This document shows, one piece after another, positions 321-38,877 of a stretch of 64,000 nt of DNA; within the stretch, counting starts at the first letter, position 1; each line of letters begins with the position of its first letter. A program made the translations under genes and the position numbers. The stretch is taken from sequence record MZ622713.1; one strand, written 5' to 3'. A model generated the notes under the pieces. That model was not told the origin of the DNA, made no database searches, and worked only from the letters and a program-made list of their open reading frames with translations.

Positions 321-3230
321 TTACTCTTTTGGTTCTTCTAAACCTTCATCGTCAGCTTGTTCTTCCTCTGACTCTTCCAGTTCTTCACCATCGATAGTCT
401 CATCAGGTTCTTCGAGTTCTTCAGTTTCTTCTTCCGGTGTTTCATCCAGTTCAGAATCTTCCAATTCTTCCTCTTCTTCTGAATCACCATCAAAGTCCTC
501 AAGCTCGTCTGAACCAGTATCAACTGTTTCATCAGGTTCTTCAACACCTAATGGGTCGTCGCCAGCTCCATCTGCATCAAACTCAGATTCAGGCTTAGGC
601 ATCGCCTTCATAATGCGGTCGATACGATCACCGAATTGTTTCATGTATTCTACCATGAAGTGACCCAAGTTCTCGTTAAAGTAATCGAGGTCATTAAGTA
701 GTGAATACATACCACCCTCTTTACCTTTGTTCATGACGTCATCGAACGGGGTAGGGATGTTAAACAACTTAAACGCACGGTAACGGATAACAGCAGCGAA
801 TTGAGCTTCCAGTTCATCCGGAGCGAGTTTATCTTCGGAGATACCAAGACGAGACAACAGAGGACCCATCAAACCTTTAGCCGCAGACATCTCAACCACT
901 TTCTGTGACCAATCTTCCGCTAGCTCCATCTTCTCTTTGATCTTAGTTACCGACTCCATAGTAGTAGGACGAGGAAGTTCAACGTAGAAGTTCTGAATAA
1001 AGTCATTCAGAATAATCATTACCTTTTCTTTCTCATTCCCTTCAATGGCTTCCTTGCTATCAGGAACCCATAGTTTCTTAGGAGTTTCCAAGATGGTATC
1101 CACCAGACGGTTCATGACTTGTTCGTTAACCATTAGGTTCTTACGAATCACGTCACTTAACATCTCAGCTAGATCAGATTGATACATGATGGTTTGGTTA
1201 CACAACGTTTCCTGTTCAGCCAGTGCTTCAATCTGGAAGTTGTTACCATTCTCATCACGCTCATCCAGCCAGCTACGTGGAAGACCAAAGGTATTAGCGA
1301 TAGAAGCTAATAGGTATTGACGAGAGTCTTCATCTACTCGTTTAAAACCAGTGCGATCAATCTGGTTAAGTTGCATCTGAGGAGCAGTAACGAATTTGTT
1401 GTCACCAGCTTCCACACGAATCAACAACGACTGTTCCTTTAAGGCATCCACGATCATTGGCATGGACAGAGTACCTGTAGAGATCAGGTTGTGTACCGTC
1501 GGGTTAGATTTAAAGAACTCATAACGAGCCATAGAGATCGTTAGATCAGGGTCCGTGTCTTGAGCTTCCAAAGCAACTACCAACTCATTACGAGTCTGTG
1601 CGTTATCTAACTGAGCTAGTGCATCCGCTACGTCCAAAGCCGCTAGACGTGCGATGAAGTCTTTAGCTTGAGTCGTTAAAGATTCACCGATACCTAAACG
1701 GTTATGCTGGAACGCCATGTAAGTGAAGTAACACTCAGGGATGTACAGTACACGAGTACGTTGTTGTTGGAACGCACGCTCTAGGAACAGTTTAAGTACG
1801 TCTTCTTCTAAATCAATGGAGATGTCCGAACCGTCACCACCAGACCATACCGCTTGGTAAAGTTCTTTCTCAATTTGGTTCTTCGCCATCATAGCGAATT
1901 CACTCATATCGAAATCACATTCACCACCTTGCTGTACTTTACGTAAGTTAGCGATTAAGGTGTTGGTGTCTGTACCAGAAGGTTTGTTATCAATCTTGTT
2001 AGCTTGTGCACTCAGTGATTGATAGAACTGGTAATCCTTACTCATCTTCAGGAATTCACCGTTGTCATCAATCAGTGCATAACCACCACGTAAACGCTTC
2101 ACATCGCCGTGAACGTGCACAGGGATGAAACATTCACTAGGAAGGTGATAACCTAGAGGTGTGCCCCAAGGAGCTTGTGTGTATACACGAGGAGCGCGTA
2201 TTGACTGAGTCGCCTTAGTAGGGTAGCTGCGTTCACCCGGCATGACTTGTTGCAGGGCTTCTTGTTGAGCCATACCCAAGTTAACAGTCTTAGCTCCCGG
2301 GTTAGGTTGCTTAGTTTTCTTTTTGTCTTTGTCTGCTTTAGCGTTTAACACGTCTGTTTTATTTAGACGGTTATTCACGTAGTTAGCAATAGACTCATTA
2401 CCTTCAATGTTGGACAAACGTTCTTTAATGCGTTGACGCATGTTTTGCATAGCTAACACACTGACGTTGTCCGTTACGGTAATGCCGAACTCAGGGGAGA
2501 CGATAGGGAATTCGTATTCGTCTTCCGTTTCCTCACCCCACAAACCTTCCATACCACCGACGTTTTTGTTCTTGGATGGGTCAGTAACGAAACCAATGTT
2601 CTTCGCTAGCATGACTGACTTGTCACCCAAAGTGGTGGTCTTGAATACTTTGTTTATTTCACCTTCAACCAGACTACGGTAATTCTGTTTAGAGAACGCT
2701 TCATTACCTTCAACCAGTTGGTTACCATTGATGATGTTATCCAAAGCAGGTCGGGTAATATTGAGTTTCACATAACTACCACTACCGATCAAAAGGTCCG
2801 AAACCATTTGAGGTAGTTCACGCTCGATTTTATAGTCGTTGGTGTAGTACTCACTTAAGACTTTTAACAGGCTGTCGTGCAGTTTTGTGTTTTTAAACTG
2901 ACTCGAATTAGTGTCGTAAGTCAAGATGTTTTTTGTGGCACCGTTAGGGTGTAGAATCAGCGTCTTCCAGATCACTTCAGCTTTAGTGATGTAAGGTGTG
3001 ATTTTCTTCAAATCCACTGTAGCGTTGATCGTATTAGCGATGATGTCGCCTAAGTTCTTTAACTTACGACCTTCTACACGACGTAGTTGTTCTTCTTCTG
3101 TCCCGGTGCCGGCGGCCCTTGTTTCCGCTACTCGTACATTAAGAATAGCTTCTAAAGGTTTAGGGACGTGCGTTAGCGACTTACGTAACTTCGTAAGATC
3201 GGCCCGAGTATTACCTCTCGTTCCTTTCAT
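321..3230 (-). CDS. Probable portal protein (phiKZ gp129-like), very acidic C-terminal tail
   Basis: 969 aa, divergent from a 703-aa virion gene as in phiKZ-like genomes; D/E-rich last ~90 aa. Assignment is from size and recalled synteny. Confidence 0.65.
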   Translation of the reverse strand: MKGTRGNTRADLTKLRKSLTHVPKPLEAILNVRVAETRAAGTGTEEEQLRRVEGRKLKNLGDIIANTINATVDLKKITPYITKAEVIWKTLILHPNGATKNILTYDTNSSQFKNTKLHDSLLKVLSEYYTNDYKIERELPQMVSDLLIGSGSYVKLNITRPALDNIINGNQLVEGNEAFSKQNYRSLVEGEINKVFKTTTLGDKSVMLAKNIGFVTDPSKNKNVGGMEGLWGEETEDEYEFPIVSPEFGITVTDNVSVLAMQNMRQRIKERLSNIEGNESIANYVNNRLNKTDVLNAKADKDKKKTKQPNPGAKTVNLGMAQQEALQQVMPGERSYPTKATQSIRAPRVYTQAPWGTPLGYHLPSECFIPVHVHGDVKRLRGGYALIDDNGEFLKMSKDYQFYQSLSAQANKIDNKPSGTDTNTLIANLRKVQQGGECDFDMSEFAMMAKNQIEKELYQAVWSGGDGSDISIDLEEDVLKLFLERAFQQQRTRVLYIPECYFTYMAFQHNRLGIGESLTTQAKDFIARLAALDVADALAQLDNAQTRNELVVALEAQDTDPDLTISMARYEFFKSNPTVHNLISTGTLSMPMIVDALKEQSLLIRVEAGDNKFVTAPQMQLNQIDRTGFKRVDEDSRQYLLASIANTFGLPRSWLDERDENGNNFQIEALAEQETLCNQTIMYQSDLAEMLSDVIRKNLMVNEQVMNRLVDTILETPKKLWVPDSKEAIEGNEKEKVMIILNDFIQNFYVELPRPTTMESVTKIKEKMELAEDWSQKVVEMSAAKGLMGPLLSRLGISEDKLAPDELEAQFAAVIRYRAFKLFNIPTPFDDVMNKGKEGGMYSLLNDLDYFNENLGHFMVEYMKQFGDRIDRIMKAMPKPESEFDADGAGDDPLGVEEPDETVDTGSDELEDFDGDSEEEEELEDSELDETPEEETEELEEPDETIDGEELEESEEEQADDEGLEEPKE

Positions 3231-3250: not shown

Positions 3251-5362
3251 ATGGAAAATATTGAATTTAACGCCCACGTGGAGAGCGTGTTCAGTTTGAT
3301 GCGCACCTTGGTTATCAAGTGTGAAGCAATAGGTGTCACTGATAACCGTCTCCTCGCAAATGCAGGATACCCGGTCTCCGAAGACAAACGCCAGTGGCGT
3401 TATTACCTCAACATGACCGGTGAATACCATCAGACTGACGAACCCATGTATGTGACCTCCATCGACAACGGAGAACAAATACTGTTTAATAAGACTAACC
3501 TAGATATCCACTTGGCTACACGCCGTGCATATCAGCCGGGGTCTTATTGGTATAAACGATTGTCCGAACAGTTCCCGGGACAAATCGACCTAATCAACGG
3601 GATTATGGATCCCATTGATATGGAGACCGCTATCACAGCCGAAGACTATAAGATCTTACGATACAATAAAGATCTTATTGAGTCTAATGAAGATCAACTC
3701 ATTCCGGGGCTGCAAAGATGGATAAACGCGTATACCCAGCGACATTTCAAAAGTGATTACATCCATACGGAGAACTTACAACTCCCTATAGATTTAGCAA
3801 CCATCTATGGATTGATGATACCGTTGGTTTTGATATTACGACTGGAAGCCTTCGGCACACGCAATGTGTCGGACTACCACGTATGGAACCGTCTCAACTC
3901 ATACGGGGATTTCCGTAGCTACCGTTCTGGTCTGGGTGATAAACAGAAGATGTGGTTGTACCGCAATATTGAATACTTGCGTAATAACCTAGGTAAGAAC
4001 TTTACCTTGGAACAACTCATCGAAAACCTACTTACTCCAGAATCGATTCCTATCTTCCATTACCGTTCTTTACTTAACACGGATAAGATGGAAGAAGAAA
4101 AAGCTCAACCAGAAGGATTGTTCATTAAAGAGCGTCTTAACTTCAAAGAGCTAGAATACGACACAGGTGAACGTTACACTAACCAACAGTTGTTAACGTT
4201 AGAAGACCCTATGGCTCGTGACAACGCTTTACTGAAAGCCCATCACGAAGTCTTAGCGGAACCAGAGTCCAAAGAATCCACATTTAACGACCTCAGTACT
4301 AAAGTGTTAGACTCCACCATGGAAGACTACACTAACCGTCACGATGACACGTTAATGAAGACGTTGTTCCATGAATGGATTTATATGTCCAAGCATGGTC
4401 TCTACGAATCCATTGTGGATTTTGTTGATCCTCTGAACGGCAACCACGTTAGACTCAACACCCACGACGCTTTGATCTACTGGCAGCTGTTGCTAAGGTC
4501 TTACCTTGGCACTCCGGTTGAAGTGATTGAACCGTTTTGGTTCCAATGGGTGATGACCAAAGATCTGCGTAGCTGGGAAACCTTCCGTGCAGCTGGCCCT
4601 AGTCCACAGTTACAAGACTACGTAGTTACCGATATCCGTAAGCAATGGGTTCCTACACTTAAGGTAATCTCTCCGGATACTTTCTTTGAACAATGTTTCG
4701 AAATCCATCAAGCTAAGTGGAAAGCTAAGAAGATTTACTCACAGCACGATGAACTGTATCAACACGCTTACACCAAAGAGTGTGTGCGTCGTTTGTACGA
4801 CCACGGTTTATACTGGATGCATGACCCTGAAACTTACCCTTCTGTACAATCTTGGTTGGATGACAAAGAACTTCATCTTGCTAAATACAGTAAAGGTGAG
4901 CTGATTGAGTTGTGTTGGGAAATCTTCACCAAAGCCACTGGTTGGGATGTGAAGGGGGTGGTGTCCTTACGTCAAATCCAAAGTAACCTAGTTTCTTTGA
5001 TGACCGACCTGAGTTCATACACTATTCAAATCTTGAAGGATATCGACGACGGTAATACTACCGCCGAAAACAAAGATGGTATTCATCTAGGTTTGACTGG
5101 GGATAATTACATGAGTAACGTTGGGGAATACTTAATTAACCCAATGGTACCTGTGGATGTTCACGCTGTCCCTATGGCGGGTATGAACGAATACCTCATC
5201 CAAATCGATAACCGTAATCATCACGATACATTGGAAGCGAGTACGAGAGATCACTTTAATATCGACATCGACTTGAATATCCAAGAAGTTCCGTTCGATC
5301 AAGTTTCTAATCTCCGCATACCACTTAATGTGGGTGTACGAGAAGCTACTTGGGCGTATTAA
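3251..5362 (+). CDS. Virion structural (baseplate-type) protein, phiKZ gp128-like
   Basis: 703 aa; N-terminal WRYYLNMTGEYHQTDEPMYVTSID motif typical of this jumbo-phage family; position next to the portal. Confidence 0.65.
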   Translation: MENIEFNAHVESVFSLMRTLVIKCEAIGVTDNRLLANAGYPVSEDKRQWRYYLNMTGEYHQTDEPMYVTSIDNGEQILFNKTNLDIHLATRRAYQPGSYWYKRLSEQFPGQIDLINGIMDPIDMETAITAEDYKILRYNKDLIESNEDQLIPGLQRWINAYTQRHFKSDYIHTENLQLPIDLATIYGLMIPLVLILRLEAFGTRNVSDYHVWNRLNSYGDFRSYRSGLGDKQKMWLYRNIEYLRNNLGKNFTLEQLIENLLTPESIPIFHYRSLLNTDKMEEEKAQPEGLFIKERLNFKELEYDTGERYTNQQLLTLEDPMARDNALLKAHHEVLAEPESKESTFNDLSTKVLDSTMEDYTNRHDDTLMKTLFHEWIYMSKHGLYESIVDFVDPLNGNHVRLNTHDALIYWQLLLRSYLGTPVEVIEPFWFQWVMTKDLRSWETFRAAGPSPQLQDYVVTDIRKQWVPTLKVISPDTFFEQCFEIHQAKWKAKKIYSQHDELYQHAYTKECVRRLYDHGLYWMHDPETYPSVQSWLDDKELHLAKYSKGELIELCWEIFTKATGWDVKGVVSLRQIQSNLVSLMTDLSSYTIQILKDIDDGNTTAENKDGIHLGLTGDNYMSNVGEYLINPMVPVDVHAVPMAGMNEYLIQIDNRNHHDTLEASTRDHFNIDIDLNIQEVPFDQVSNLRIPLNVGVREATWAY

Positions 5363-27273: not shown

Positions 27274-28587
27274 ATGGCTAAGCCTAAACAAGCAGTTAAA
27301 GCACCTGTATCTCTAGCAACAGCAACACCATGTAAATTGGACGAAACAGCAACTCCTGAACCATCGATTCCTGAGCAAACAGGACACGATTCACTGCCGG
27401 AAGTCGAGCAAGAAATTCGTTACGTTCATACAGGACCTAAAGGTTCGGTGGTCACCAAGGGTGGTGAAGTGTTGTCGATTGACACTAAGAACACTGACCC
27501 GGTTAGTGTCTCGGAACTCACCCGCGAATCTTACGCATTAAGAATGACGTTAGAAAATGTCGTCAATCGCATGATGTACCGCAAGTTCTTTTCCGAAGAA
27601 CGTGTTTCATTCTGTGATCGACCTTCTGAAAACATCGAAGACGTGAAACTTTATCCTGTCGTGGTTAGTCCTGAACTAACAGTTTGGATGGACGAACACT
27701 CCTCACTAAACCTAGATAGCAACGGTGAGTGTGATGGTTTCTACTCTCGTGTTCAAGATGAGCTTAACAAAACCAAACGTGTGCTGGTTTTGATTAACTC
27801 CTGTGTTGAACTCGGTGTGGTCAAAGTCCATGATCAGTCTTCATACAACACGTCGGTTTTAATCAACTGTACTGGTAAAGTTAGCTCTATCGCTAGTTCA
27901 GTTGTGGCGGCGGATACACACCATAACCGTGCCGAACTTGAAGTTGGGTCTATGATCAACTCGGACATCACTTTCCGTGGTTGGAAACTGAAGTGTGACC
28001 GTTTAGATACTGTTGATATCAGTGGTTCAACTGTCACTGTTAATGGCATAATCGAAAGTTCAGCCATTGAAGATTCACATATTTGTGGTGACAGTTACAG
28101 CAGCATGGTGTCAACCAATGTTCGTAACTCTACGTTGTACGTCAAGTCTTTCCATCTAGGCAACCGTCATGGTAACGACGTCTGGGCACCTCGTATTAAC
28201 ATCGATCGTGAAGCGTTCTACTTGAATGATCATTCGATTGAGATTCGTCGTGGTTTTGAGTTTGACTATATCGGTCGTGGTTACCGCTGTAATGGCTTGA
28301 TGTTTGTACCTCTACGCAACACAGGTGATGGCATCACCAAGTTCTTGTTAGCAGCGCCTAACAAAGAAGGTCGTGATTACTCATCTCCTGAAGCTATGAT
28401 CGATTGGGATATGAGCCGTGACGAGCTACGTAAAAACGTTACTGCTTTGTTGTTCCCTGAATTAAAATCCGACAATCCTTTGGCAGGCGTTGGCACGCTA
28501 GAAGGTTCTATCATTAATGAAGCGGTTTCGGTCCTATACAACCGTCTACGCATTATTAAACAGACTCGCCTAGCATCTGCTCTGTAA
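27274..28587 (+). CDS. Hypothetical protein with Pro-rich N-terminus and possible beta-helix segment
   Basis: 437 aa, AAGGAA Shine-Dalgarno; short I/V-x-(D/N/S)-S-x-I/V repeats mid-protein. Confidence 0.7.
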   Translation: MAKPKQAVKAPVSLATATPCKLDETATPEPSIPEQTGHDSLPEVEQEIRYVHTGPKGSVVTKGGEVLSIDTKNTDPVSVSELTRESYALRMTLENVVNRMMYRKFFSEERVSFCDRPSENIEDVKLYPVVVSPELTVWMDEHSSLNLDSNGECDGFYSRVQDELNKTKRVLVLINSCVELGVVKVHDQSSYNTSVLINCTGKVSSIASSVVAADTHHNRAELEVGSMINSDITFRGWKLKCDRLDTVDISGSTVTVNGIIESSAIEDSHICGDSYSSMVSTNVRNSTLYVKSFHLGNRHGNDVWAPRINIDREAFYLNDHSIEIRRGFEFDYIGRGYRCNGLMFVPLRNTGDGITKFLLAAPNKEGRDYSSPEAMIDWDMSRDELRKNVTALLFPELKSDNPLAGVGTLEGSIINEAVSVLYNRLRIIKQTRLASAL

Positions 28588-36044: not shown

Positions 36045-36333
36045 TAGTTTAGCTAAACAACTTCCTGTCTACCACCTTCTATCAGACCGTCGTGAGTTAT
36101 TCCGTATCGTACTGATGATTGCGCTCGGTGGAGCCGCATCTTTAATCGGATGGACATGGTTACAAGGAACGATAGGTATCGCTATTTTCTTCCTATTGTT
36201 TATTGTTAACTTTGGTAACTCTTACTTAGTCCGTGTTAAACCTTACGGTAACTTGTGGTTTAGCAAAGGTGCTATCGGTTTAGCATGTATCGTTGGCTTT
36301 GTGATTTGGTCTGGGGTGTCAGCGGTACTATGA
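36028..36333 (+). CDS. Small membrane protein (3 TM)
   Basis: Three hydrophobic segments; overlaps both neighbours. Confidence 0.7.
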   Translation: MNNANNSLAKQLPVYHLLSDRRELFRIVLMIALGGAASLIGWTWLQGTIGIAIFFLLFIVNFGNSYLVRVKPYGNLWFSKGAIGLACIVGFVIWSGVSAVL

Positions 36334-36623
36334 GAAACCTAAAGCATTTATTTACCCACGACATGGCTTCCGTTATGGTTCTTACTTTATACGGGGTGTC
36401 CTTAATTGCGTTCTCACAAGGTTTGTTATGGGTCGCGTTAGCCATCATCACGGTAGTCATAATCGATCTTGCCCATGTCGCTGTAATCAAACCTGAGGTC
36501 TACCACCGCCGTATGCGGAATAAAGAGTTCTTTACCGTTAAGGCTTTATGGTTGGATTTGATCATCTGGGGTCTGGTGTATTGGATTTACTTTAACGCTG
36601 ACTTTATTCGGAGCTTGGTGTAA
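36330..36623 (+). CDS. Small membrane protein (3 TM)
   Basis: Start revised to ATG 36330 (ATGA overlap); hydrophobic segments. Confidence 0.7.
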   Translation: MRNLKHLFTHDMASVMVLTLYGVSLIAFSQGLLWVALAIITVVIIDLAHVAVIKPEVYHRRMRNKEFFTVKALWLDLIIWGLVYWIYFNADFIRSLV

Positions 36624-36895
36624 TGGACGACTATGAGGGCGACCCAATCAATTGGAGAGCGTGGTTCTTTGGCACCACAATCATGGCTATATGTGCTGCT
36701 CTGGAACTTTATTCCGTAGTATTCGGGTTTATCTTAGGGTATGTGGTTCGTTGGTGGCTGGATGCCATCACGGACTCTCCAACCCATGAAATAAAGATCA
36801 AGGACGAGATCAAAATATCCATCACTAATTCTAACATCGCTATGATGTCTAGTTTGTTAATCGTCACGTCATTTTTGTTAATGGGATTCCAATGA
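36623..36895 (+). CDS. Small membrane protein (2-3 TM)
   Basis: TAATG overlap; hydrophobic segments. Confidence 0.7.
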   Translation: MDDYEGDPINWRAWFFGTTIMAICAALELYSVVFGFILGYVVRWWLDAITDSPTHEIKIKDEIKISITNSNIAMMSSLLIVTSFLLMGFQ

Positions 36896-36930
36896 GTAAA
36901 ATCTATTTCTATACCAGCGCCATGAATTAA
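36892..36930 (+). pseudogene. tdk: 12-codon 5' stub of thymidine kinase (MSKIYFYTSAMN*)
   Basis: ATG AGT AAA ATC TAT TTC TAT ACC AGC GCC ATG AAT TAA encodes exactly the first 12 aa of TK at 38284; ATGA overlap with the upstream gene. Confidence 0.9.
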
Positions 36931-36948
36931 CATGGAGTTGTTTTCAGG

Positions 36949-36966
36949 TCTACATTATCTAGGTGT
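36949..36966 (+). promoter_or_regulatory. Putative early promoter inside the HNH cassette
   Basis: TCTACATTATCTAGGTGT matches the 18-bp motif. Confidence 0.55.
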
Positions 36967-36990
36967 TATGATAACTTTATTAGGTGATGT

Positions 36991-38226
36991 ATGTTAAAGA
37001 AGATTTTAGGATCTGTGTATAGTGTGGATATAGAGACTAAGGACCTTTACAAAAACACAACTCTTATCCACAAAGGTAATAAAAAGGGAACTTTCAAAAT
37101 AACAATAAACGGTAAGATTTATAAGGTCGATATCAATTATTGTTACATTCTTGCTCTTTACGAGTTGCATTTTGAAACTGGTGATGAGCATATGTATTTC
37201 AATATTGAAATACAAAAGATGAAAATAAGAAAGTTAAAATCATCGCTTGAAGACATGGTGATTGAAATCCCAGTTTTCTCTTCACCTTTAGAAAAGGAAG
37301 GATATAGAACAATTTCCACGTTTCCTGAGTATGAAGTAAATGAAGAAGGCATTGTCCGTAAGAAAAGTGACGGTGAAGTCATACCACATTATTTTCACAA
37401 AGGTACTGGGTATTACACTTGTCGTGTAAGGGATCCTTTGTTAGGAAAGAATCGTTCGGTTAGAGTTCACCGTCTAATCGCAATGGCGTGGAAGAAAAAT
37501 TTAAACTATGTCGTTGCACATTATGTGAACCATATAGACGGTGATAAGTCGCACAACTATGCGAGTAATGTGGAATGGTGTACTCCTAGCCACAACACTA
37601 AACATGCTTGTGAAGAAGGTTTACAAAAAGCTAGAAAGTATCTAAAGAAGGATTTAGAGACTGAGGAGATCACCGGTCCGATGCTATTGGGCGATCTAGG
37701 GTTTCCAGTAGCTGAAATACGAAATTGGATGAAACGTTTAAATCGACTTTTACCATTCAAAAAGAAATGGGAGATAATAGAGGTCGGTGGTAAATGGGAA
37801 TCCAAGTTTGGAGAAAATAGCTGGATATGCAATGAATATGTAGGTCTAGGTGTGCAGGTTAAAGACGTGAGCAAATGGGAAGCTGGTGAAGACTTTTTAT
37901 TTGAATTTGACACTCAGAAAGCTGCCGCTGACTTTACATGTTCCGACCAAGGAAGAATTTCTAGATTATTAAAGTCGGGAGAACAAGATCAAATTTACAA
38001 TGGTTATTGTTTTAGACCAAAGTCTGATAAACCTTGGGATACCAAACCTTATATTCCGGGTGGTCAGAAAAGAAAGATAAAAATTTCTTGGGAAAATGGT
38101 AAGGAATTAATTTTTGATAATCTTAACTTGGCTGCCGATCATGTGAAGTTAACTCGACAGGCGTTAAGTAGACGTATTAAATTAAACTTATTATTGGACG
38201 GCTTTAGAGTTTCATATGTAAACTAA
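36991..38226 (+). CDS. HNH homing endonuclease (NUMOD4-HNH-NUMOD1-like)
   Basis: YRTISTFPEYEVNEEG.V...GYY.C (NUMOD4-like), VRVHRLIAMAW...VNHIDGDKSHNYASNVEWCTPSHN (HNH) and C-terminal F.(S/T/N)...AA repeats. Confidence 0.9.
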   Translation: MLKKILGSVYSVDIETKDLYKNTTLIHKGNKKGTFKITINGKIYKVDINYCYILALYELHFETGDEHMYFNIEIQKMKIRKLKSSLEDMVIEIPVFSSPLEKEGYRTISTFPEYEVNEEGIVRKKSDGEVIPHYFHKGTGYYTCRVRDPLLGKNRSVRVHRLIAMAWKKNLNYVVAHYVNHIDGDKSHNYASNVEWCTPSHNTKHACEEGLQKARKYLKKDLETEEITGPMLLGDLGFPVAEIRNWMKRLNRLLPFKKKWEIIEVGGKWESKFGENSWICNEYVGLGVQVKDVSKWEAGEDFLFEFDTQKAAADFTCSDQGRISRLLKSGEQDQIYNGYCFRPKSDKPWDTKPYIPGGQKRKIKISWENGKELIFDNLNLAADHVKLTRQALSRRIKLNLLLDGFRVSYVN

Positions 38227-38230
38227 TATT

Positions 38231-38272
38231 CCCTCCCTTTATGGGAGGGTATCATCTATCTTTATTTTTTTT
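38231..38272 (+). terminator. Hairpin plus displaced T-tract after the HNH gene
   Basis: CCCTCCC-TTTAT-GGGAGGG, then TATCATCTATCTTTATTTTTTTT. Confidence 0.55.
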
Positions 38273-38283
38273 AGGAAATTATA

Positions 38284-38877
38284 ATGTCAAAAATTTATTT
38301 TTACACAAGTGCGATGAATGCCGGAAAATCGACACTAGCTATTCAGACAGCGTTTAACTACAAAGAGCGAGGGATGTATCCTTACGTTCTTAAACCGGTT
38401 GTGGATACCCGTGATGGTTGTCCTCGTACGTTGTCAAGTCGTAGCGGTGCTAAGTGGGATAACTGCATTCCTTTCCCTAAAGAAGGGTTGGGTGAACTAG
38501 AGTTATGGTTGCGTAATCCTGAACAAGCACCAGACGTGATTATCATTGACGAAGTGCAATTCATCAGCGTAGACCAAATCGAGGCACTAAGCCTTATTTG
38601 TGCGGAACGTAAGATTCCTTTGTTGTGTTACGGTTTACGTAATAACTTCCAAGGTGGTGGATTCCCTGCTTCGGATTGGTTGTTGCGTCATGCGAGTTCG
38701 ATCAACATTGTGAAAGGGATGTGTTGGTGTGGTAAGAACGCGACACACAACATGATGGTGTTGGACGGGAAAGCTCACTACGGTAGCCCGGGTGAATCAG
38801 CGGTTGTGGTAGGTGGAAATGAAACTTATCATGCGGTGTGTTTAACCCATTTCCGTGAAGGTAAATACGAGCGTTAA
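38284..38877 (+). CDS. tdk: Thymidine kinase (TK1/bacterial type)
   Basis: SAMNAGKST (P-loop), IIIDEVQF, LCYGLRNNFQG..F..S..LL, zinc lasso CWCG...YHAVC..HF. Confidence 0.95.
   Translation: MSKIYFYTSAMNAGKSTLAIQTAFNYKERGMYPYVLKPVVDTRDGCPRTLSSRSGAKWDNCIPFPKEGLGELELWLRNPEQAPDVIIIDEVQFISVDQIEALSLICAERKIPLLCYGLRNNFQGGGFPASDWLLRHASSINIVKGMCWCGKNATHNMMVLDGKAHYGSPGESAVVVGGNETYHAVCLTHFREGKYER

Follow-up and report, generated by a model that had tools for sequence, protein, structure and literature searches.

The thymidine kinase gene (tk) of phiKT1019, a Vibrio phage of the nucleus-forming jumbo type (PMC10587174), contains near its start an endonuclease gene flanked by two versions of the first tk codons. 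We studied this locus in a stretch of 64,000 nucleotides of MZ622713, hereafter the window. We propose, with a probability of roughly 0.75, that the locus holds a free-standing, I-HmuI-like HNH homing cassette that lies within the tk open reading frame (ORF) and carries a replacement for the 5' end of that gene.

An initial annotation, made from the sequence alone, had noted that the peptide MSKIYFYTSAMN is encoded twice around an AT-rich HNH gene. We read the locus in exactly the same way, and found that the GC content of the insert is 0.356, compared with 0.43-0.46 in the flanks. The upstream copy, which we refer to as the stub, ends after 12 codons, and its ATGA overlap closes a chain of start/stop-coupled genes, as had been described; every link of the chain is present (ATGA at 36330, TAATG at 36623 and ATGA at 36892). 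The downstream, live copy begins at 38284, where ATGTCAAAAATTTATTTTTACACAAGTGCGATGAATGCCGGAAAA encodes MSKIYFYTSAMNAGK... and opens an intact thymidine kinase (TK) of 197 amino acids. This protein matches the Pfam family TK (E = 3e-29) and is 97.5% identical to the TK of phage pTD1. Also in agreement with the initial annotation, the insertion lies inside the tk frame, just 5' of the P-loop codons, and the endonuclease gene is followed by a ribosome-binding site (RBS), an ATG, and tk codons 1-12 and beyond.

The stub and the live copy share 27 of 36 nt. The 9 nt that differ fall in seven codons, all of the changes are synonymous, as first claimed, and the longest identical run is 6 nt. We tested for flanking duplications by comparing both flanks of an insert as six-frame translations against shuffled sequences; blastn-short overlooks synonymously diverged repeats, the window's own included, and the protein-level test was used in its place. 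The phiKT1019 flanks scored 67, compared with a maximum of 43 in 100 shuffles. When 9 substitutions were placed at random, the peptide was kept in 0 of 200,000 trials. The silent character of the differences therefore suggests that both copies evolved as working tk starts, in two lineages. The initial annotation had explained these differences as a synonymous recoding carried out by the element. We found that the stub also differs in 7 of 12 codons from the tk start of pTD1, which has no homing endonuclease gene (HEG), and that natural tk alleles differ pairwise by 3-9 codons. Judged by these comparisons, the silent differences are ordinary allelic divergence with no special recoding, and the replacement start is a foreign natural allele.

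We next compared the locus with its relatives. Seven of seven HEG-less relatives (pTD1, VP4B, phiKT1028, PDCC-1, 2 TSL-2019, USC-1 and Aphrodite1) have a single tk start and no duplication, so that the duplication named beforehand as a potential refutation, one in relatives without the HNH gene, was absent from all seven. In the Tidunavirus members pTD1, VP4B and phiKT1028, the start of tk is at the position of the stub and shares nucleotides with the stop codon of the gene before it, without a spacer between them. Because tk starts exactly there in these three phages, the stub represents a displaced tk start. The earlier view of the stub as the original start of tk thus holds for its position; its sequence lies in a divergent block (see below), and it is probably not the old start of the phiKT1019 lineage itself. 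Similarly, the expectation that relatives would start tk at the equivalent of 36892 was borne out in the three Tidunavirus phages. The naive alleles do not run on into GCCGGAAAA, as had been predicted; they run into AGT/TCT-GGN-AAR-ACN, encoding SGKTTT. Presence and absence thus alternate at one precise site, with seven HEG-less relatives of phiKT1019 and, in a second set of phages related to Miami (see below), four genomes with an insert and two without. Among metagenome contigs we found no further tk relative above 42% identity, and IMG/VR holds known isolates only.

The comparison with pTD1 also revealed the limits of a foreign tract. pTD1 lacks the whole insert and is ~90% identical to the window on both sides. 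Identity is ~0.9 up to 36615, is lost from 36616 to ~38340, and is >0.9 again beyond. Within tk, codons 13-19 encode AGKSTLA in phiKT1019 and SGKTTTA, without variation, in the seven relatives. Over these codons 12 of 21 nt are unlike pTD1; the three replacements, S13A, T16S and T18L, leave a valid Walker A motif. Differences from pTD1 are concentrated at the 5' end of the gene (17 of 63 nt, versus 38 of 531 in the rest; Fisher p = 1e-5), and the control comparison of pTD1 with VP4B gave no 5' excess (p = 1.0). By maximum likelihood, the change point is placed after tk nt 57, at window position 38340; from nt 64 on, the gene is 92.8% identical to that of pTD1. The foreign tract thus extends to about codon 19, beyond the codons 1-12 to which the imported part was at first confined. 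On the other side, the protein of the upstream gene, which we call geneU, is only 24% identical to its pTD1 counterpart, compared with 81-97% for neighbouring genes and 65% between pTD1 and VP4B at the geneU position. With a foreign tract that runs to tk nt 57 and a divergent gene upstream, the locus displays co-conversion of its flanks.

GeneU (36623-36895, 90 amino acids, hydrophobic) takes the place of a conserved small membrane-like gene of pTD1, VP4B and phiKT1028, and we found no homolog of it among GenBank phages (by tblastn), in Pfam or in the PHROGs. With regard to the genome as a whole, the paper describing the phage (PMC10587174) places phiKT1019 closest to Aphrodite1 and phiKT1028 closest to pTD1; the window, from a record under the name phiKT1019, has ~90% identity to pTD1 and is far more distant from the Aphrodite group. 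Either the genome is a mosaic or the names have been crossed between records.

The inserted gene encodes a full-length protein of 411 amino acids, its homologs having 415, 410 and 410. A profile built from this protein and its two closest homologs matches PDB 1U3E, the structure of I-HmuI (E = 1.7e-10, amino acids 113-210). Residues H181, N193 and N202 align with the HNN catalytic motif and are invariant in the three close members of the family. The protein also matches PHROG 59, 'HNH endonuclease' (3e-31, amino acids 17-409). Matches to Pfam HNH_3 in all three close members are weak, as is that of a second stretch to the C-terminal helix-turn-helix of 1U3E (amino acids 364-411, 5 bits); a match to NUMOD4 (4.5e-4) was obtained for the member from metagenomic contig L007, and one to I-HmuI_NUMOD-like (0.014) for one member. 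I-HmuI makes its nick in the downstream exon, 3 nt 3' of the site of insertion, and DNA that contains the intron is cut as well, protection being due to sequence differences 3' of the site (PMC3428280). The heavily altered patch that lies directly 3' of the phiKT1019 insertion point would fit this geometry.

Close relatives of the enzyme are rare: we found only three among ~15 billion proteins, and IMG/VR contained none closer. Two further candidates were set aside. A tblastn match within the window (27424-28092, 24% identity, E = 0.005) is probably spurious, as it falls in a 437-amino-acid ORF (27274-28587) that has no HNH features. The best GenBank match, in the Pseudomonas phage PhiPA3, is not the characterised intron nickase gp210 but an unannotated ORF within a split 'putative helicase'. 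This HNH-like ORF (positions 2501-3184 of our PhiPA3 sequence, L087) is 32% identical to amino acids 1-229 of the phiKT1019 protein, and lies between 'putative helicase' genes 134 and 131, adjoining a small 'putative endonuclease' gene, 133. The PhiPA3 helicase gene is presumably interrupted by an intron or split.

The same layout recurs in the clade to which the enzyme belongs. Two of the close homologs, from metagenomic contigs L006 and L007, could be submitted to the flank test; the third close relative, L016, has no right flank and stood outside it. The L006 homolog is 46% identical to the phiKT1019 protein, and its gene has as its neighbour a convergent gene for an RNA polymerase beta subunit (phrog_2962, 5e-50), whose 3' end it adjoins. 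We found that the last 12 codons of the polymerase gene, its stop codon, a T-run and a hairpin are present twice around the HEG; the copy that lies upstream of it reads SVRIYSLSDLFE and the live one SVRNYELSDLFE. The flanks scored 64, compared with a shuffle maximum of 46, and contain a 29-nt repeat that is 90% identical. In L007, whose homolog is 43% identical, it is the start of the downstream gene that is duplicated over ~10 codons (MTIKKEGTLN and MSIQKAGSLN); 23 of 34 nt match in register, a value reached in 0 of 5000 shuffles.

The cassettes of phiKT1019 and L006 also resemble each other outside the coding sequence. Their leaders are homologous from CATGGAGTT and CATATAGTT, respectively, onward, and both HEGs are closed by a 3' module of hairpin, spacer and TTTATTTTTTT. 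In phiKT1019 the hairpin has a folding energy of -14.8 kcal/mol, and TTTATTTTTTT occurs twice in the window, compared with 0.12 occurrences expected. The second occurrence of this arrangement, at 265-325, is a hairpin, ATATCCTCCATCCC...GGGATGGAGGATAT, with TTAACGTAGTTTATTTTTTTA after it; the latter borders directly on the stop codon of a gene on the minus strand. The whole resembles a terminator that serves two convergent genes in both directions. In its spacer and T-run it nearly matches L006 4880-4905, a similarity suggesting that the L006 metagenomic phage is a relative with the same terminator signal. We had considered the hairpin and T-run as a signal specific to the cassette, and rejected this in part, since the same module is a native terminator at 265-325; for the same reason, we conclude that the cassette uses the terminator type of its own phage group. 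A 21-codon ORF at 36932-36997 was likewise rejected as the remnant of a donor's upstream gene: it aligns with the non-coding leader of L006, where the ORF is not conserved. In L006, ~300 nt of AT-rich DNA (4540-4850) without a convincing gene, and with a 27-nt tandem repeat at 4786-4839, lie between a terminator and the stub hairpin. We found no blastn or tblastn similarity that would mark this DNA as a decayed earlier HEG.

A separate HNH lineage has entered tk in Klebsiella-type jumbo phages. In the Klebsiella phage KPN8 and in VB_ZK_P1, BUCTxx100 and phiKp_32, a different HNH gene interrupts tk at codon 11, which is 4 nt away from the position homologous to that in phiKT1019. Its product is only 30% identical to the phiKT1019 enzyme, over 103 amino acids of the core, and matches HNH_3 (1.6e-6). 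The stub in these phages encodes MAKIYF[Y/T]YSS plus 2 nt and follows a native terminator and RBS, while the live tk (MAKVFF...MNSGK) begins at the stop codon of the HEG (TAATG). Miami and YC1 have the same neighbourhood without HEG and without stub. Relative to Miami, the four HEG-bearing genomes are 96-98% identical in the left flank and stub, 83-88% in tk and 92-98% in the next 600 nt. On this evidence, the stub is clearly the native start in the KPN8 set, and the expressed tk a foreign allele that came with the HEG. The distinction between a native displaced copy and a foreign expressed copy is thus clean in the KPN8 set; in phiKT1019 the live 5' end is foreign, and the stub, too, is far from pTD1.

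Some details of the public annotations touch on this arrangement. In KPN8 (L089, 1419-2501) the HNH gene is annotated from a GTG that reads through terminator and stub in another frame, and in KPN8 (2462-3088) and phiKp_32 (L093, 2462-3088) tk is annotated from a GTG 39 nt upstream of the conserved ATG; these start calls look like artefacts of the stub arrangement. Codon 7 of the two copies also varies among the four HEG-bearing genomes (1469-1500 and 2501-2533): VB_ZK_P1 and phiKp_32 have ACT in stub and live tk alike, and KPN8 and BUCTxx100 have TAT in the former and AAT in the latter. This pattern may be a hint of exchange between the two copies or of different recombinants. The features of the phiKT1019 locus are collected in Table 1.

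Table 1. Features of the phiKT1019 tk locus (window coordinates).
Feature	Coordinates	Strand	Description
geneU	36623..36895	+	upstream membrane-like gene, 90 amino acids; stop overlaps stub ATG (ATGA)
Stub	36892..36930	+	displaced tk start; ATGAGTAAAATCTATTTCTATACCAGCGCCATGAATTAA encodes MSKIYFYTSAMN (12 codons, 36892-36927), then TAA
Cassette leader	36931..36990	+	conserved TAYATTAT element; Shine-Dalgarno sequence of the endonuclease gene, AGGTGA
HEG	36991..38226	+	I-HmuI-like HNH homing endonuclease gene, intact, free-standing, 411 amino acids
Cassette 3' module	38231..38272	+	hairpin CCCTCCC-TTTAT-GGGAGGG, spacer of 11 nt, then TTTATTTTTTTT
New tk ribosome-binding region	38273..38283	+	AGGAAATTATA, read from the sequence; AGGAAA-type RBS
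Live tk codons 1-12	38284..38319	+	taken to have arrived with the cassette
P-loop patch	38320..38340	+	tk codons 13-19; end of the foreign tract; candidate immunity and target region
tk	38284..38877	+	functional-looking thymidine kinase gene, 197 amino acids; hybrid of foreign 5' end and resident body

From these observations we propose the following mechanism, in which the nuclease activity, the cut site, the immunity and the route of origin are read from sequence and are put forward conditionally. The cassette, composed of leader, 411-codon ORF and hairpin/T-run terminator, occupies the point between tk codons 12 and 13, directly 5' of the P-loop codons, and would travel with a foreign tk 5' end comprising RBS, ATG and codons 1 to ~19. 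This foreign end would have met the resident tk body by homologous recombination at ~38340, and the old 12-codon start would persist as a dead stub that is still coupled to the upstream gene. To spread, the nuclease would nick or cut naive tk alleles in the conserved stretch of codons ~11-19. Repair would then copy the cassette and the replacement start from the HEG-bearing genome, with the stub and upstream DNA serving as the left homology arm and the tk body as the right. Divergence of the sequence around the site (12 of 21 nt, with S13A, T16S and T18L) would shield the HEG-linked allele. Since stub and live copy have no identical run of more than 6 nt, deletion of the insert should be hindered, and it may be that only diverged pairs of stub and live end persist. 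Repair that uses the stub as its left arm would reproduce the structure precisely, which may be why the stub looks native in the Miami-like set.

The element probably first arose by one-sided repair, in which the right side was made by homologous recombination in tk and the left side by a join at the break that was non-homologous. A non-homologous join on the 5' side of the HEG would fit the constant polarity of the arrangement, in which the stub is always 5' and the live end always 3'. For phiKT1019 itself, the simplest history would be that the stub arrangement formed in another lineage, and that a block running from geneU through stub and HEG to tk codon 19 then entered by homologous recombination, with the right-hand crossover within ~20 nt of the insertion point.

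Several observations weigh against this proposal. Nuclease activity and cleavage of tk are predictions from sequence. The residue that aligns with the metal-binding Asp74 of I-HmuI is an asparagine, Asn180, in 3 of 3 close members. A donor tk allele with AMNAGKSTLAIQT was not found when IMG/VR and 185,579 species genomes were searched with the degenerate pattern AGKSTLAIQT; since no donor was found, it is divergence that identifies the allele as foreign. The stub differs from pTD1 at 8 of 36 nt, more than the tk body does (p = 0.003). It is therefore unlikely to be simply the resident start of phiKT1019, and the history of the locus probably involved at least two steps. Key signals are carried by only 36-63 nt, and the six-frame test revealed no flanking duplication in the distant family members L017 and L019. 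The within-genome flank test was not significant for KPN8 (35, compared with a shuffle maximum of 42), and for this reason the KPN8 case depends on the comparison with Miami and YC1. Finally, the description of tk as essential, given in the initial annotation, is a supposition for phiKT1019.

We weighed four other explanations. The locus might be a one-off scar of illegitimate recombination, in which an intergenic HEG and neighbouring tk DNA were pasted in non-homologously, the stub being an accident and homing perhaps lost. Such a scar would account for the left junction, whose origin is non-homologous under any model, and for a left flank in KPN8 that is native right up to the break; it would also be compatible with the restriction of this particular insert to the phiKT1019 genome and with a nuclease whose activity is a prediction. 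We nevertheless consider it unlikely, as the arrangement occurs four times independently (in tk of phiKT1019, at the RNA polymerase beta gene of L006, in L007 and in Miami-like tk), always with the stub on the 5' side of the HEG. Moreover, the Miami-like insert is common to four genomes of differing background, implying spread, the HEG ORFs are intact and conserved over their whole length, and the break adjoins the most conserved tk motif in two unrelated HEG lineages. Direct repeats around the insert, together with a left end at nearly the same cassette position in phiKT1019 and L006, could instead point to a transposon-like insertion whose target-site duplication diverged later in place. This we regard as very improbable: all 9 differences are synonymous although the stub would have been untranslated or free of selection, an outcome that no random placement produced. 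In addition, the repeats are 75% identical in phiKT1019 and vary in length from locus to locus (36 nt, ~34 nt, 32 nt, and >39 nt plus terminator), the changed tract extends 21 nt past the repeat into tk with three amino-acid changes, and no transposase is present.

Continuity of tk could also be restored at the level of RNA or translation, by a cryptic intron or another bypass linking the stub with codon 13. In favour of this, one can point to a stub that is in frame, shows translational coupling to the gene upstream, and has as its last codon the one before the P-loop. However, we found no Rfam match with E <= 1 in 36500-38700, and the downstream 'exon' opens with its own RBS and ATG and a repeat of codons 1-12; for these two reasons a group I or group II intron is unsupported. 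A second copy equipped with an RBS and an ATG, and with its peptide perfectly conserved, would serve no purpose if splicing removed it. No register of the repeat gives the 5' splice-site U and the intron-end G that are usual in group I introns, and a TAA directly follows the stub. We therefore give this explanation hardly any credence, and agree with the initial annotation that no splicing is involved. The gene likewise does not contain an intein, as TAA closes the stub and the HEG forms an ORF apart, for which a Shine-Dalgarno sequence of its own is present, nor is it a gene in pieces: the downstream ORF is a complete 197-amino-acid TK that includes residues 1-12. An artefact of assembly or annotation, for which one might cite the origin of the genome in a laboratory that also handled the sibling phage phiKT1028 and the mismatch between this region and the nearest relative stated in the paper, is equally hard to credit. 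With 9 of 36 nt different, the copies are not a repeat that was collapsed or duplicated; both the HEG and the AGKSTL patch are missing from phiKT1028; and the same architecture is present in five other independently sequenced genomes or contigs. A homing cassette that brings a replacement gene start remains the explanation that we favour.

To our knowledge, HEGs in essential or useful genes have been thought to survive only through self-splicing introns, inteins or, occasionally, the splitting of the gene. The phiKT1019 locus and its independent counterparts show an alternative at the DNA level in phages, in which the element brings a spare gene end. The main new result is the recurrence of this layout, which had gone unremarked in public phage genomes and which suggests a general route for HEGs into ORFs. 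More tentatively, at somewhat less than even odds, such terminus-replacing cassettes may be a general and as yet unnamed fourth lifestyle of HEGs in phage genes, beside introns, inteins and split genes. I-HmuI-like nickases of nucleus-forming jumbo phages would repeatedly invade ORFs ~10-12 codons from an end and carry a diverged end with its expression signals; the stub would act as the left arm, and divergence would be selected because it blocks deletion. If this is true generally, hybrid gene ends and mosaic boundaries in phage genomes would have in these elements a source that has stayed hidden.

If homing is confirmed, it would explain some of the hybrid gene termini and sharp mosaic boundaries in jumbo-phage genomes, and would link phage biology to a phenomenon documented before only in fungal mitochondria. 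It would also provide a natural case of marker-free, site-specific replacement of a gene end. Two tractable pairs, phiKT1019 and either phiKT1028 or pTD1, as well as KPN8 and Miami, would become available for the study of one-sided gene conversion driven by a nickase-type HEG. Finally, it would serve as a warning to annotators, as the stub has apparently led to wrong starts for the HNH gene and tk in KPN8 and phiKp_32.

The phiKT1019 element shares features with several known systems. Like I-HmuI, I-HmuII or I-BasI, the HNH nickases of Bacillus phages, its enzyme has an HNH_3 core, with candidate NUMOD4-type strands before it and a candidate C-terminal helix-turn-helix. Enzymes of this type target highly conserved stretches of genes for nucleotide metabolism or replication, with immunity via sequence differences 3' of the insertion site and not via disruption of that site. 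They reside in self-splicing group I introns, whereas the phiKT1019 locus has no ribozyme and the carried gene start restores continuity at the DNA level. As in the intronless homing of T4 (SegF, SegG and MobE), a free-standing HEG lies beside its presumed target, with polymorphism, co-conversion of flanks and a mosaic boundary; the T4 genes are intergenic and have no duplicated fragment, while the phiKT1019 gene is inside an ORF and a stub remains. Aeh1 nrdA-mobE and T4 gene 39/60-mobA (PMC2988022) are similar in that an HEG stands at a critical motif in a coding region with no intron or intein. In those cases the protein is made as two polypeptides that reassemble; in phiKT1019 the downstream gene encodes the protein in full, and the stub of 12 residues is superfluous. 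The initial annotation had set the locus apart from intron, intein, ordinary intergenic homing and the Aeh1 mobE case, and in this it was right; the arrangement is not without precedent, given the fungal elements described below and the other phage genomes described above.

A review of mobile DNA in T4-like phages treats HEGs inside coding regions as split genes only and never mentions duplication (PMC2988022). Similarly, a survey of HEGs in ICP1 and T4 uses 'duplication' only for HEG coding sequences and repeats of DNA-binding domains, with no duplicated host-gene ends (PMC10448857). When we searched the full-text literature on HEGs with partial duplication, thymidine kinase and intronless homing for a phage precedent, only organellar papers were found, a provisional result given that most subscription journals fall outside the coverage. 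The terminus-replacing arrangement is thus known from fungal mitochondria and apparently not yet described in phages.

A published precedent for the layout is provided by the mobile ORFs (mORFs) of fungal mitochondria, which lie near the 3' ends of atp6, atp9, cox2 and nad3 and carry a foreign C-terminus (PMC3630166; see also PMC6279837). They have been found in atp6 of Allomyces macrogynus, in atp6, atp9, cox2 and nad3 of Glomus, in atp9 of Rhizopus and in cox2 of Mortierella; the native C-terminus is displaced and, for atp6 and cox2, is not transcribed (PMC3630166). As with mORFs, the phage elements place an endonuclease ORF inside a gene near one end, a diverged and apparently foreign end would be the expressed one, the other, presumably native end is displaced, and the differences are largely synonymous. 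An endonuclease ORF between two diverged ends of a host gene, one of them contiguous with the gene, is present in phiKT1019, L006, L007, and KPN8 and its relatives. mORFs reside in organelles and affect the 3' end of the host gene; they are usually fused to it in frame, and their enzymes are of the LAGLIDADG or GIY-YIG type. In contrast, the phiKT1019 element encodes a phage HNH enzyme of the nickase type and is free-standing, having a start and a terminator to itself. The end replaced in phiKT1019, L007 and KPN8 is the 5' end, so that an RBS and a start codon are supplied as well, and L006 is the 3'-end version. The likeness of the phage elements to mORFs is thus one of mechanism, not of homology.

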